From Salpingoeca rosetta (Eukaryota; Protista; Choanoflagellata), in contig JAWQFM010000035.1 in the NCBI GenBank assembly GCA_033442325.1, positions 280,730 through 341,471 on the forward strand: a DNA stretch of 60,742 nucleotides. Reading direction: 5' to 3'. The notes under the pieces are model-generated. The model was not told the origin of the DNA, searched no databases, and was given only the letters and a program-made list of their open reading frames with translations. The position numbers and the translations under genes were made by a program. How positions within the stretch are numbered: the stretch's first letter is position 1; every line of letters begins with the position of its first letter. Positions 9,691 through 36,430 of the stretch are shown piece by piece.

Positions 9691-12600
9691 TCACGCCTCT
9701 GCATCTGCATCTCCCTCGAGGGTCCAGGGTGTTGGGCGCGCACACGGCTTGGCCAGGCTGCAGTCGAAGCGTGGAAGGGAGGGGGGAGGGATGGTGGTGG
9801 TGGTGTTGGTAGTGGTGTTGGTGGTATTGATGTTTTGTTGGTAAAGGCGAGTCAGTGAGGAGAGACATGTGAAGCAGTCGCATCAAGGAGGAACACACAA
9901 TTGCACACACACGCACACACACGCACACACACACACATACACACACACGATTGCATGCATGCACACCTTGTCTGCATGCCGTTTGGTGCGTCGGTGTGGT
10001 GGGCGATGAGATCAACGAGCGAGCGGTGTTTCAACAGCGGCGCCGCCGATGCAATCCACGCCCCATCCACATACGCAATCTGAGTTCATGTGAGTGTGAG
10101 TGGAATGAGTGAGTGAGGACACGTGTGTATGCGTGTGTTAGATGTACGTGCACGTGCGTGTGAAACAACAACAACAACAACAACAACAACAACAACAACA
10201 ACAACAACAACAACAACAACAACAACAACAACAACAACAACAACAACAACAACAACAACAACAACAACCACCACGACCAACACCAGCACAGCGCTGCCAA
10301 CCTTGTTGTGGTAGCAGCGCCCGCCAAACGTGAGGGAGATGATGAAGATGTCTTCTTCGCGCGTGCTCTTACGAACGAGAAATCGCCCGTCCACGGGAAC
10401 AGACAGCAGTCGCGCCTCAGCCTCCTGCACGACGCGGAACAGGGCGGGCGAGGGATGTTGAGGGGTTGAAGGGTACATGATCGATTGTGGTGATGATAGT
10501 GATGGGAGGAGTGCACAAAACTCCTTGACAAGTAACTGTTGGTGCAACCTTAAGCACGCACAGAGTCAGACAGGCAGGCAGGCAGACACACAGGCAGGCA
10601 GATGCACAGTCAGGCAGACAGGCAGGCAGGCAGACAGGCAGGTAGGCAGACACACAGTCAGGCAGACAGGCAGGCAGGCAGACACATGCACACACACACA
10701 CACACACACACACAGACAGACACAGACACAGACACAACACGCACACAGTCCCTCGCCCTGCGTGCTGACCTCACGGGAGATTGCGCCGTGGTACCAGCGG
10801 TGGCACTGGAAGGGCGTGGCCTTGAGCGGATACTGCTGCGACCGAACCATCTTCAGGAGCACATCGTGCACCGTCGAGCACTGATGATGATGATGATGGT
10901 GATGATGATGATGAGGGAAAGATGGAGTCGGAGACGCCAACAAGGAGAAAAGTAAGAAGTGGGCGAGAGGTGAAGCAACGCATCACAACACACACACACA
11001 CACACACACATGATCGTGAGCGACAGTGCACGCCTGCAGCAGAAGCACTCGAAGACCACATTCGCACCAAATCACAACGACAACATCCTCTCCACATCAC
11101 CACATCGCACCACCACCGCCACCATAACATCACCACATCACGTACATCCGGCACGTCCTGTCCGCCAATCCTGAGGGCACCGCGCTTGCTCATGCGTTCA
11201 ATGAGAATGTTGCACACTTCACCGCCGCCGTTCACAAACGACACCGCCCACGCCTTCGTTGGCAGGCGCTGGCCCTGACGTAGTGGTGGCGGAGGGGGAG
11301 ACGAGGGTGCAAGAGAGGGAGTGAGCAAGTGGGAGCAAGTGGGAGCAAGTGTAAGTGTGTGTGTGTGTGTGTGTGTGTGTGTGTATGTGTGTGTGTGTGT
11401 GTGTGTGTGTGTGTGTGTGTGTGTGTGTGTGTGTGCGAGTGTGGGGTGGAAACGAAGACGGGCATTGTCACATCACCAATCCACACCACCACCACCAACA
11501 CCGTGACCACGCTCGCATCTCCGTCATGAGCGATACCGGTTTGCGTTTGAACGATCCGCCTGGACGCATGTCCTTCTCGCGCACGAGAAACAATCCGGGG
11601 GTGGTGCCAGCCTGCACGGTGTGGTGTGCGGTGCATGATGGTGTGATGGTGGCTCGTTGGTTGGTGCGCTTAAGAGCAAGCTGCACACAACGGAGACACA
11701 CACGCAAACAGACACAAATAGACAGACAGACACACGCATGCACACATGCACACACGCAAACAGACACAGGCACACACACACAGACGCACAGACAGACACA
11801 CAGACACACACAGACAGAAACAGACACAGCACAGACACAGACAGAAACAGACAAACACAGCAAGTGTGCGCACCATTCTGAGGTACGCCGCGGCCTCTGC
11901 GCGTGTGTTTGCGAGACAAAAGTAATCGGGGAGAGTGGACTTGGCGCGAAAGGCAACTTGGCGCACCTCATCCTGATGAGGAATGATCGGAGATGGCAAT
12001 GGCGATGGTTGCATGGAGGTGATATGTGGATATGAATGAACTTGGAGCGGCTTGGAAATAAGGGTGGAGGGGGAGGGAGGGAGGAAGACAGCGAGAGGAA
12101 CGCATTCAAAGAGCCCACTCACCAATTCACCTCCTCATGTCCTCACACTTCCCTGACCCACTCACCCACCTACTCACTCGCGCCACTCCACCCCCACCCC
12201 TCTTCGCACATGATTGACCCACCGGCACGGCGCGTGTATCGCTGCCTGTGCTCGAGGTGCTGGTGGTGCGAGGGTTGCGCATGGCAAAGCTGCCGGAGCG
12301 AAAGCCGCGCTGCGTCAAGCGAAGGGACTGCTTCATCTGCTGTCGCTTCATCTGATGTTGATGGTGCGAGAGAGAGTGTGTGTGCGAGGGGGGGGAGAGA
12401 GAGAGAGAGAGAGAGAGAGAGAGAGAGAGAGAGAGAGAGAGAGAGAGAGAGAGAGAGAGAGAGAGAGAGAGAGTGTGTGTGTGTGTGTGTGTGTGTGAGT
12501 GAGTGTGTGTGCGAGGGAGAGAGAGAGAGAGAGAGACAGAGAGCGAGAGAGAGAGAGAGAGAGTGTGTGTGTGTGAGGGTGTGTGCGCGTGTGCGTGAGA

Positions 12601-33700: not shown

Positions 33701-36430
33701 TACGTTGGCCTTTCCAGCATGCAGTCGTGCGCATGCTCTACGTACAGCGGTGTTGTGTTTGCATGCGCAGACCCAGACGACGACACCCCCGTCGTTGACT
33801 GTGCAGAAGCAGGTGTCTCAAACGCGGCAACGTGCGACGCGCAGTGCACCGGGCATGCAGGCTGCTTCTGCGCTTTCAAGGAAAACGGTGACGCGTCCGC
33901 GTGCAATTGTGGAGACTTTGGCGGCAACATTTACTTTGCCTGCGCCACCAGTGTTGCAGTTGAAAGTGATGACAACGACACCACACCAGATACCAACGAC
34001 ACCACACCAGATGACAACGACAGCACACTTGATGACAACGACAACACATCAGATGGTGATGGCGACAGCACACCTGATGACAACGACAACACATCAGACG
34101 ACGACGAGTTTAGCGTGATTTTGACGATTGAGTGCATGGCTGATGGCATTTACTCCCAGTCAACGTGCGAGACGCAGCATTGTGATGCCAATGACCCGGC
34201 GTGTGTGTGCATGTTTTCTTCATCTGGCGCGTATGGCGGGTGTTTGTGCATTGACCTGACCACAGCGACACCGTTTTACGCGTGCACAAGCTATTTCAAC
34301 ACGGATGATGACGACAACAACACGGGCGGTGGCCATGATAATGATGACGACGAGATCTTCGTTGTTGGTGGCGGAGACGACGACAACTTGGCTGGTGCTC
34401 CGGACTGCTACGATGACGGTGTGACCACCCCAGCATTGTGCGACGCGCAGTGCGACTTGAATCCCTTTAATGCTCCATGTGCGTGCCGATTCCGAACTAG
34501 CGCAACGGCGGTGTCGTGTGGGTGTGTCACCACCACAAGCAAACCCGTGTACTTGTGTGTGACGCCGCTGGGTGACGGTGCTGGCGACGACGATGTTGCT
34601 GACGATGATGACGCAGGCAAGATCAACAACGACGACAACCAGACTGATGATGCTGTGGTTGTCATTGATGGTCCGGACGACGATGACATTCTGCTTGGTG
34701 ACGGCGGTGCTACTGACGACATGGTCAACACCACCCCTGTTGATCCCGCCGCTGCTGCTGATGACGATGACAACGGCACAGGCGCCAGTGCTTCTGCTTC
34801 AAGCGCGTCCTCTCTCGCCCCAATTGTCGGTGCAGCCGCCGGTCAGTACACGAACGTGTGTGTGTATTGAGTGCATGTGTATTTGATTGTGATTGAGCAC
34901 ATGTGTGTGTGTGCTGGGGAGGGAGTGTGGCACGAGGCTCAAGGCAAACTAATTTGGTGTTGGATGGCAACTGCTATGCTATCTGCACACTGTTCACTCA
35001 TATCATCACCTCTCTTGCTTATCACGGTGGCAACCACAAACGCATCCATCATCCACACACGCACACACGCACACACACATATACACATGCACATGCGCAT
35101 GCACGCACACACATGATTGCAGGTGGCGTGTTGCTGATTGCGTGTGTGGTTGGCTTTGTTGTCTATCGTCGTCGTAACCACATCAGCGACAGCACTACAA
35201 AGCTCAACAGCGCCAGTAGCAGCACTGGTAAGTCCACTTGCTCCTTGGTTGTGATTGCTGTGGTGATTGCTGTGGTGATTGCTGTGGTGATTGCGCGGGT
35301 TGTGTGCAGAGCAGTGTTGTACTTCATGAACCTTCCTGTTGCCCCAAGTTCGCCAACATGCCAACTCACACACATTGACACTCCCACACAAAACGCACAC
35401 ACAAACACACACATACACACCCACACATACATACACGATCAAAGGGGTGCTGTTTGTTCCACCGCGAAAGCTTTCATCGACCAAGTCGTCATCGTCACCA
35501 ATGGAGCGAGAATACCTCGAACCCACAGCGACAACGAAAAAGCAGAACCCGCTGTACAGCGAAGCGACCGACGCCAGCACCGACGAGAACACGTACGAGG
35601 CACTCAACTACGCAGACGTCGTTGCCATGACCGGCAGTGGCGCAGGTAACAAGAACAAGAACATGGGTAAGGGCAAGGGCAAAGTGAGTGGCGGTGTGGC
35701 GGCCGATGCAACGTCTCCAACATACGACAATGCGACGCCGTTCTCTGCTGCGATGCTGAGTCAGATCTCAGCCCTGCAGGCTGGCGTGGCAGGCGCCGAT
35801 GTGCTGTACGACAACAGCACTGCTGGTGATGCTGTGGTGTACGACAACACCACAGGCGGCACGGAGCCCGTTTATGACAACAGCACTGCTGGTGGCGCTG
35901 TTGTGTATGACAACAGCACTGCTGGTGGCGCTGTTGTGTATGACAACAGCACTGCTGGTGACGCTGTTGTGTATGACAACAGCACTGCTGGCTTCAGTGC
36001 ACAGCCGCTCTACGACAACACCACAGGCGCCAGCGTGGGCGCTGTGTATGACAACACCACATCAGCAGCAGAGGCTGTGTATGATAACCAACTGCGCCGC
36101 AGTGAGGGCGGAGTGCGCGGCGTTGTGTACGACATTGGTGGCATGGCTGAGATTCACGATGCTAATGATGACGACGAGGACGATGTGTATGCTGAGGCAA
36201 GTGTGTTTGGGTTTGGCGGCAACAAGATGTCGCTGAACGAGGTGCGCCGTGTTGATGGTGGGTACATCGAGACGTTCCCTGCAAGCAGCGTGGATCAAGA
36301 CAGCAGCAGCACCCACGATGATGACGATGATGACGATGATAACGCTGATGGTGGCAACGGGTTGGTGTATGACAACATGGGTGATGATGGTGATGTCTTG
36401 TACGCCGCGCCAATGCGACCAAAGAGATGA
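27743..36430 (+). CDS. Large single-pass receptor-like protein: signal peptide, PPC-like domains, 7 Cys-rich repeats, acidic spacers, TM helix, Tyr-motif-rich cytoplasmic tail, no kinase domain
   Basis: Signal peptide MAHLRPPSSAVAALALPLLLLLTATAA; several small 5' exons (28.0-30.3 kb); ~4.3-kb exon ~30581-34851; TM LAPIVGAAA|GGVLLIACVVGFVVYRRR (35122-35228); last exon ~35444-36430. The last two junctions are phase-consistent; 5' exon connectivity is inferred. Confidence 0.8.
33115..33365 (+). repeat. Coding 21-bp tandem repeat encoding (TPDDND[SN])n; related copies at ~33965-34105
   Basis: Unit acacc[ta]gatgacaacgaca[ga]c repeated in tandem inside the receptor's large exon. Confidence 0.9.
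35800..36090 (+). repeat. Coding ~33-bp tandem repeat encoding (VVYDNSTAGGA)n
   Basis: Unit gtgtatgacaacagcactgctggtggcgctgtt, near-perfect at ~35870-35990 and degenerate on both sides. Confidence 0.9.

Follow-up and report, generated by a model that had tools for sequence, protein, structure and literature searches.

A 60,742-nucleotide stretch of contig C35 of the choanoflagellate Salpingoeca rosetta (JAWQFM010000035.1; C35:280730-341471; hereafter the window, whose own positions are used wherever no contig is named) carries three genes of the phosphotyrosine pathway: a PTB-domain adaptor (PTSG_10713), a tandem-SH2 protein encoded directly downstream of it, and a kinase-less, receptor-like membrane protein (PTSG_10716). 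The reading favoured here, with a probability of roughly 0.55, is that these are three real and separately transcribed genes whose closeness carries no demonstrated meaning, that the adaptor is a docking protein of the IRS/Dok/FRS2 kind, and that the SHP2 orthologue encoded elsewhere in the genome is its default reader. An earlier note on this DNA had instead suggested that the three could form one relay running from the receptor through the adaptor to the tandem-SH2 protein.

Public gene calls for the same DNA (NCBI GCA_000188695.1, scaffold GL832988.1, S. rosetta, with the same runs of N) list five genes within positions 9691-36430. Among these five a PTB gene, a tandem-SH2 gene and a gene for a receptor with a tyrosine-bearing tail were found, in agreement with the earlier count of three phosphotyrosine components out of five. 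All three are annotated merely as hypothetical proteins, and their PTSG identifiers were not found in the searchable literature. In addition to the docking protein, S. rosetta has a tandem-SH2 protein that lacks an enzyme domain and begins with an unusual harmonin-like region, and an orphan receptor with an array of Grb2-type sites in its tail. As transfection and genome editing exist in S. rosetta, the three proteins are concrete candidates for binding and knockout work.

A docking-type adaptor and its candidate readers

The assignment of the adaptor to the IRS/Dok/FRS2 kind rests on its N-terminal domain. Pfam, PDB matches and fold comparison all place an IRS/Dok/FRS2-type PTB domain at about residues 4-97, encoded by four exons (16920-17839, minus strand). 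The match to Pfam PF02174 (IRS-type PTB) covers residues 27-93 and, at 26.6 bits (E=6.1e-6), exceeds the curated cut-off of 22, with a single 25-residue exon reaching 18.7 bits by itself. The closest solved relatives are the PTB domains of Dok1 (E=5.9e-7), Dok5, Dok2, FRS3 and FRS2 (E=0.0013-0.019 for the two FRS proteins). A comparison in which both sides are predicted models points the same way, as the Atlas model of residues 1-109 has the PH-like fold and matches the models of Dok1, Dok3 and Dok6 at TM 0.76-0.80. The Dok1 segment RRYG...EAGRRC, whose basic residues we take to be the phosphotyrosine pocket, aligns with LRGYG...EAGRRC in the adaptor, so that three of the four arginines are kept and one is replaced by glycine.

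Behind this domain follows a low-complexity tail of 270 residues with five tyrosines (Y101, Y231, Y274, Y290 and Y361). Two of them form a pair of similar motifs on the minus strand, YTQIQF (Y231, 16095-16112) and, 43 residues further on, YADIDF (Y274, 15749-15766). In each motif a small residue occupies +1, Ile or Leu +3 and Phe +5, and the N-terminal SH2 domain of SHP2 prefers the class of motif with a hydrophobic residue at +3 and an aromatic one at +5 (PMC8591604). The combination of an IRS-type PTB domain with two tyrosine motifs, already read from the sequence in the earlier note, is found in the protein.

A distant orthologue of the adaptor on a 3264-bp choanoflagellate contig from a metagenome (ENA ERZ27290678 k119_384619, hereafter L002) has PTB exons 51-53% identical to those of S. 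rosetta and keeps both motifs. The first reads YTQLDF in L002, and the block around the second is identical at 18 of 20 positions. The two tyrosines lie about 37 residues apart in L002 versus 43 in S. rosetta, and the sequence between the motifs is not conserved. Because the paired motifs and their spacing are kept while the intervening sequence diverges, the motifs are under selection, and YTQ[IL]xF and YADIDF are probably real docking sites. The tail as a whole has these two SHP2-class motifs and one YVNF, and conservation is seen for the two SHP2-class motifs alone. YVNF (Y361, 14798-14809, minus strand), a Grb2-type pYxN motif nine residues ahead of the stop codon, was not found in the remaining part of L002, and the YxxM motif YIPM (Y101, 16899-16910, minus strand) is YVPA there and hence not conserved. 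A second conserved tail element is an acidic stretch around DDISALMDEFGL (15005-15139), which is kept in the orthologue as DIDALLEEF (L002:2687-2779). The database protein from L002 consists of exons mixed with intron translation, prokaryote-style gene calls having read through the introns.

Among characterized docking proteins the adaptor combines features of two families. As in Dok1-7, with Dok1, Dok5 and Dok2 closest in sequence, a disordered tail bearing tyrosines for SH2 docking comes after the PTB domain. Unlike these proteins, the adaptor has only 370 residues and no PH domain, none being detected in it by the Pfam scan and the PTB domain beginning at residue 4; the alignment is confined to the PTB domain and does not imply orthology. 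The position of the PTB domain at the extreme N-terminus and a tail with two SHP2-type sites plus a Grb2-type pYxN are rather reminiscent of FRS2 and FRS3. Here the differences lie in the single YxN and in the start of the protein, as the annotated N-terminus reads MSSS, with no Met-Gly myristoylation start in the adaptor, and depends on a 7-nt 5' exon without read support. A published survey had reported Frs2, and any Frs2-type protein, as absent from choanoflagellates and the Salpingoeca matches as unconvincing (PMC7260276). The adaptor is not shown to be an Frs2 orthologue; it is a small docking protein of Dok/FRS2-like kind, in which a two-tyrosine site of the SHP2 class is conserved.

A candidate reader for such a site is encoded elsewhere in the genome searched (55.4 Mb, 68 contigs). 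Reading of the exons at C6:484382-488270 reveals a canonical SH2-SH2-PTP gene, with SH2 exons very close to animal SHP2. Judged by its sequence, this SHP2 orthologue would fit the paired motifs of the adaptor at least as well as the neighbouring tandem-SH2 protein does, and it is the most economical candidate. Under the favoured reading, the PTB domain would recruit the adaptor to a receptor or kinase substrate that has a tyrosine-phosphorylated (or NPxY-type) site, and a tyrosine kinase would then phosphorylate the tail. The motifs YTQ[IL]xF and YADIDF, about 40 residues apart, may thereby form a two-pronged docking site for a closely linked double-SH2 protein, most economically the SHP2 orthologue, with the tandem-SH2 neighbour as second candidate.

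The structure of the adaptor gene was derived from RNA-seq evidence on positions 12200-18190, namely two stranded raw-read runs and two RNA contig sets, which gave nine minus-strand GT-AG joints. The coding sequence (annotated gene 14777-18099, minus strand, 370 aa) comprises 11 coding exons (18099-18093, 17841-17726, 17485-17444, 17258-17184, 16970-16854, 16650-16319, 16113-16005, 15787-15718, 15486-15416, 15139-15005 and 14815-14777). With GT-AG at every intron, this model gives exactly the annotated protein, which was retrieved by phmmer with the 110-residue tail exon, and most of its introns are backed by RNA-seq joints or contigs. The earlier gene borders have to be moved accordingly. Exons 15005-15139 and 14777-14815 are joined to the adaptor (joints 15138/15415 and 14815/15005; one contig covering 14546-16650), and the ATG at 15172, previously taken as the start of the SH2 gene, sits in an intron with zero RNA depth, the SH2 gene having its ATG at 14411.

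At the 5' end, the annotated first coding exon (18093-18099) is the 7-nt exon mentioned above. In-frame alternative donors in a (GT)n run at 49, 55, 61 ... nt (17967-18050) would add a hydrophobic N-terminus to the adaptor, and an unspliced RNA contig (17820-17959) spans the acceptor. A model with a 49-nt first exon, a hydrophobic N-terminus and a stop at 15688 was dropped, as the geometry of the RNA contigs (side lengths 69 and 108) favours the annotated one. Loose RNA ends at 16875/16889 and an apparent joint at 13470/15022 fall on a CAG run and an acidic low-complexity stretch and were read as contig collisions, not as splicing.

The adaptor and the tandem-SH2 gene follow one another closely. 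The stop codon of the first and the ATG of the second are about 365 bp apart, all three frames contain stop codons between 14815 and 14411, and the RNA contigs of the adaptor end at 14546 while those of the SH2 gene start at 14455, leaving about 90 bp between them (14456-14545). Since all frames are closed and the RNA contigs break, these are two separate genes in tight tandem, and a fused gene or a single transcript is ruled out by the closed frames (14815-14411) and the contig break (14455/14546). The SH2 gene therefore does lie directly downstream of the adaptor on the same strand, as had been claimed, at a distance shorter than the roughly 420 bp given then.

The tandem-SH2 neighbour and the receptor-like protein

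The gene at 9691-14411 (minus strand) is annotated as encoding a 494-residue protein with an SH2 match in Pfam. Our model, based on RNA-seq, GT-AG sites and reading frame, has 13 coding exons (14411-14298, 13984-13775, 13552-13385, 13084-12977, 12779-12732, 12351-12223, 11972-11874, 11611-11537, 11274-11146, 10880-10770, 10424-10302, 10079-9967 and 9757-9691). RNA-seq confirms the first six introns, including the 12222/11971 joint, and the six introns among the SH2 exons follow from GT-AG sites and the reading frame. The model protein has 497 residues against 494 in the annotation, a difference that probably reflects one splice site shifted by three codons. The reading frame would likewise be kept by another acceptor, 69 nt upstream of exon 11611-11537. 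In searches and family scans the protein was compared exon by exon.

Two SH2 domains were found, both with the FLVR arginine. The C-terminal one (9691-10797, minus strand; WYHG...FLVRK...YHNK) is canonical: it has the alpha-A Arg, FLVRK and the beta-D His, and its single exon scores 29.8 and 29.1 bits against Pfam SH2. Among solved structures it is closest to the C-terminal SH2 domains of ZAP-70 and PLC-gamma1. The N-terminal domain (10798-11972, minus strand, four exons) has FLVRE and the alpha-A Arg and is divergent, with a long insertion after FLVRE. It was recognized with a profile built from 20 SH2 domains of the S. rosetta genome, to which its exons map in order (profile positions 1-16, 19-33, 36-55 and 44-62); the FLVRE exon matches at E=4.8e-4 and the others weakly. 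Pfam searches with single N-terminal SH2 exons gave nothing significant. Nine residues, counted from the YPL that ends the first domain to the W that opens the second, separate the two, and the linker between the SH2 domains of SHP2 has the same length. About 20 residues past the second SH2 domain the coding sequence stops, and no match to a PTP domain (PF00102, E<=0.001) was found on contig C35. The closely linked, phosphatase-less tandem of SH2 domains described in the earlier note is therefore real.

The N-terminal end of the protein is of a different kind. Its first 80 or so residues, encoded by two exons (13775-14411, minus strand), weakly match the harmonin-homology domain of whirlin (6fdd, E=0.19; not significant in Pfam) and are called harmonin-like here. 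A paralogous locus at C29:601341-603970 has a harmonin-like exon (C29:601341-601451), 41% identical to that of the window and 38% over a slightly longer stretch of 39 residues, followed on that strand, after 2.5 kb, by an FLVR-type SH2 exon. No SH2 match on C29 came out of the genome-wide Pfam search. From these exons, the architecture of a harmonin-like domain followed by SH2 seems to occur twice in the S. rosetta genome. The C29 paralogue has no PTB gene upstream of it, which rules out a duplicated module of adaptor and SH2 gene. For the C-terminal SH2 exon of the window, the closest paralogue lies on the same contig 420 kb away (C35:712183-712275; about 52% identity), with a common end motif around PCARP.

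Comparison with SHP2 (PTPN11/Corkscrew) and its sites on Gab, IRS-1, FRS2 and PD-1 reveals a mixed picture. Two SH2 domains and a 9-residue linker after YPL are shared, and the adaptor motifs have the hydrophobic +3 and aromatic +5 residues at a distance of about 40 residues. The tandem-SH2 protein differs in the missing phosphatase domain, in the harmonin-like N-terminus and in a sequence far from the genome's own SHP2, to which the SH2 exons of the window have a sole match of 11 residues (E=0.023). A paralogue or recent copy of SHP2 is ruled out by this short match and by ZAP-70 and PLC-gamma as the closest relatives in PDB.

The receptor-like gene (27743-36430, plus strand; 2084 aa) encodes a signal peptide, about 1,700 extracellular residues that are orphan and Cys-rich, a single membrane span and a tail of 348 residues. 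Several small 5' exons precede a large exon (30578-34841), the main membrane-span exon (35123-35227) and the tail exon (35445-36430). A receptor gene had been recognized here before, with borders that needed correction, the gene starting at 27743 and the large exon at 30578. The membrane span is split by an intron (34814-35166, plus strand) and followed by RRRNH. No kinase or other Pfam family was found in the protein, no tyrosine kinase (PF07714) is among the matches listed for the window, and the UniRef label reads EGF-like domain-containing protein. A homologue search returned one distant relative alone, covering 11% of the query. In the ectodomain, 7-residue acidic units (approximately TPDDNDS/N) lie between Cys-rich modules at 33600-33900 and 34250-34400.

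Nineteen tyrosines are present in the tail. NPLY (Y1794, 35546-35557, plus strand) stands 58 residues past the membrane span, and the earlier description of a kinase-less receptor with an NPLY tail is thus accurate. Judged from the composition of the tail, any NPxY among 19 tyrosines would arise by chance with a probability of about 0.045. The ligands known for IRS-, Dok- and Shc-type PTB domains have hydrophobics at -5 to -8. The residues upstream of NPLY are T-T-K-K-Q, which puts K, K, T and T at these positions and no hydrophobics. Thirteen residues after NPLY follows YEAL-N-YADV (35594-35620, plus strand). The commonest motif is YDN, of the Grb2 class (pYxN), with 11 copies at 35723-36376 (plus strand), and a Grb2 homologue has been reported in S. 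rosetta (PMC7260276). The protein may be an orphan single-pass membrane scaffold whose tail would be phosphorylated by cytoplasmic kinases, with the 11 YDN sites read mainly by Grb2-type SH2 domains. NPLY could serve as a PTB site or as an endocytic signal. LAT is a transmembrane adaptor with no kinase, almost no ectodomain and a tail array of pYxN sites for Grb2-family SH2 domains. The S. rosetta receptor resembles it in the missing kinase and in the pYxN array, and differs in its roughly 1,700 extracellular residues, which form orphan Cys-rich and beta-sandwich-like modules.

Gene linkage and alternative explanations

Physical linkage was one of the grounds for joining the three genes, and it is at the level expected by chance. 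Genome-wide six-frame Pfam searches gave 110 SH2 matches (87 loci) and 25 PTB loci of IRS or PID type, or 26 with the PTB domain of the window, which those searches missed. Four PTB-SH2 pairs lie 0.7-1.8 kb apart, each on one strand, and were each taken as a single gene. Among pairs of separate genes within 10 kb, the one observed is that of the window, and about 0.8 would be expected at random placement. The adjacency of PTB and SH2 genes is no more than chance would give, and the expectation that phosphotyrosine genes cluster above chance fails. If only loci with more than one SH2 match are counted and the distance to the PTB locus is limited to 8 kb, about 0.12 cases are expected per genome (P ~0.11), a restriction chosen post hoc.

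Synteny and expression were also considered. L002, the contig with the adaptor orthologue, breaks off about 100 bp before the position at which the SH2 gene is expected to begin. A related-locus search in metagenomes and a word search with the harmonin-like exon returned nothing, and a search with a degenerate pattern of the PTB core gave 14 loci, all of them chance matches or too short. In four RNA-seq runs the adaptor and the SH2 gene differ in depth by no more than about two- to three-fold, and from one raw-read run to the other the ratio of SH2 gene to adaptor changes two- to three-fold. The identifiers of all three genes are absent from the complete lists of colony- and swimmer-upregulated genes in the supplement text of Fairclough et al. 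2013.

Several observations weigh against the favoured reading. The adaptor and the SH2 gene stand head to tail, their RNA contigs about 90 bp apart, and have similar depth in four runs, which also suits a functional pair, and a tandem-SH2 gene beside a PTB gene is expected just ~0.12 times per genome. In addition, YADV of the receptor resembles YADI of the adaptor (a common Y-A-D-[IV] core), a likeness noticed post hoc. Perhaps, then, the two phosphorylated motifs of the adaptor clamp the two SH2 domains of its neighbour, whose harmonin-like N-terminus would pass the signal to a scaffold, while the tandem arrangement keeps the levels of both proteins matched and the receptor plays no part. 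Besides the shared strand, the short distance of ~365 bp from stop to ATG and depths of the same order of magnitude, such a pair would find support in the conservation of the paired motifs and their spacing in L002 and in a linker of SHP2-like length that suits two-pronged reading. Against it, the linkage statistic was chosen post hoc and is not significant at P ~0.11, the depth ratio is not stable between the raw-read runs, L002 ends just ahead of the expected start of the SH2 gene, and the C29 paralogue has no PTB gene upstream. As the SH2 domains are moreover not of SHP2 type by sequence and a true SHP2 orthologue exists, the two-gene pair is possible but doubtful. A more ambitious version, in which adaptor and neighbour form a dedicated and co-evolved pre-animal counterpart of FRS2/Gab-SHP2 with the harmonin-like domain in place of the phosphatase, and together with the NPLY/YDN receptor a kinase-less module like that of Draper, Ced-6 and Shark, perhaps for sensing prey or cell contact, is improbable. 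Were a link of this kind true, the unicellular lineage closest to animals would offer a compact, genetically tractable and complete phosphotyrosine docking chain, and a rare functional gene neighbourhood in a eukaryotic signalling pathway.

The explanations that include the receptor fare less well. In the full serial relay of the earlier note, phosphorylated NPLY would bind the PTB domain of the adaptor, which would itself become phosphorylated and engage the tandem SH2 domains of its neighbour. All required motifs and domains are present, NPxY would occur by chance in just ~4.5% of tails of such composition, and three of the four arginines of the Dok1 RRYG...EAGRRC region are kept. The receptor gene, however, lies on the opposite strand, with two unrelated genes between it and the adaptor and a distance of about 9.6 kb, a figure that includes assembly gaps of estimated length. 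NPLY is not preceded by any hydrophobic residue at -5 to -8, no close homologue of the receptor was detected in which conservation of NPLY could be checked, and the specificity of PTB domains is not predictable from sequence (PMC3082566). Taken together with clustering at chance level and with a dominant tail motif that points to Grb2-type readers, this renders the serial relay quite improbable. Alternatively, both readers could dock directly on the receptor tail, the PTB domain of the adaptor at NPLY and the tandem SH2 domains at YEAL and YADV, as a module for prey uptake in a bacterivore. Draper, Megf10 and CED-1 have the same parts list as the relay proposed earlier, as they pair a kinase-less receptor carrying NPxY and an ITAM (the tyrosine-based activation motif of immunoreceptors) with the PTB adaptor CED-6/GULP and the tandem-SH2 protein Shark/Syk (PMC8092387). 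Both readers bind the receptor directly in those systems, and in S. rosetta YEAL-N-YADV close behind NPLY and the EGF-like label in UniRef could be seen in the same light. The differences are considerable, though: the tyrosines of YEAL and YADV are spaced by 5 residues, unlike those of an ITAM, the receptor gave no Pfam match to an EMI or EGF domain, the PTB domain is of Dok/IRS and not of Dab/CED-6 type, and the tandem-SH2 protein lacks the kinase of Shark and Syk. With linkage no better than chance, parallel docking of this kind is highly improbable.

Neighbouring genes, assembly gaps and repeats

Between the adaptor and the receptor lie the remaining two annotated genes of the interval. One, at 18958-22508 (plus strand), encodes a 250-residue protein with an Octopine_DH match; the other, at 24560-27376 (minus strand), is divergent from the receptor gene and encodes an unrelated 538-residue protein without a Pfam family. 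Two assembly gaps fall inside the 250-residue gene, one of 934 N (19558-20491) flanked by (CA)n and (CAT)n repeats and one of 376 N (21847-22222) flanked by (GTT)n and (CA)n-type repeats, and neither is crossed by any of the three phosphotyrosine genes. Reads of opposite sense reveal a plus-strand transcript at 18141-18497 (intron 18178-18496), upstream of the annotated start of the next gene (18958) and just ~40-80 bp from the ATG of the adaptor. From this arrangement, the adaptor and the next plus-strand gene seem to be transcribed divergently from one very short promoter region.

Simple repeats are common in the introns: in the SH2 gene (GTT)n runs for about 130 nt (10150-10290), and almost all introns contain (TG)n/(CA)n. 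Mechanical lists of open reading frames are inflated because of such long repeats. A Pfam scan of the raw long open reading frames gave no match, because the coordinates used in the earlier note mix exons with introns. Ahead of the large exon of the receptor, a repeat at 30470-30560 would translate into a run of about 27 His. A single-exon gene of glycosyltransferase family 90 (Pfam, 58.5 bits) occupies 7555-9099, on the opposite strand and just downstream of the SH2 gene.

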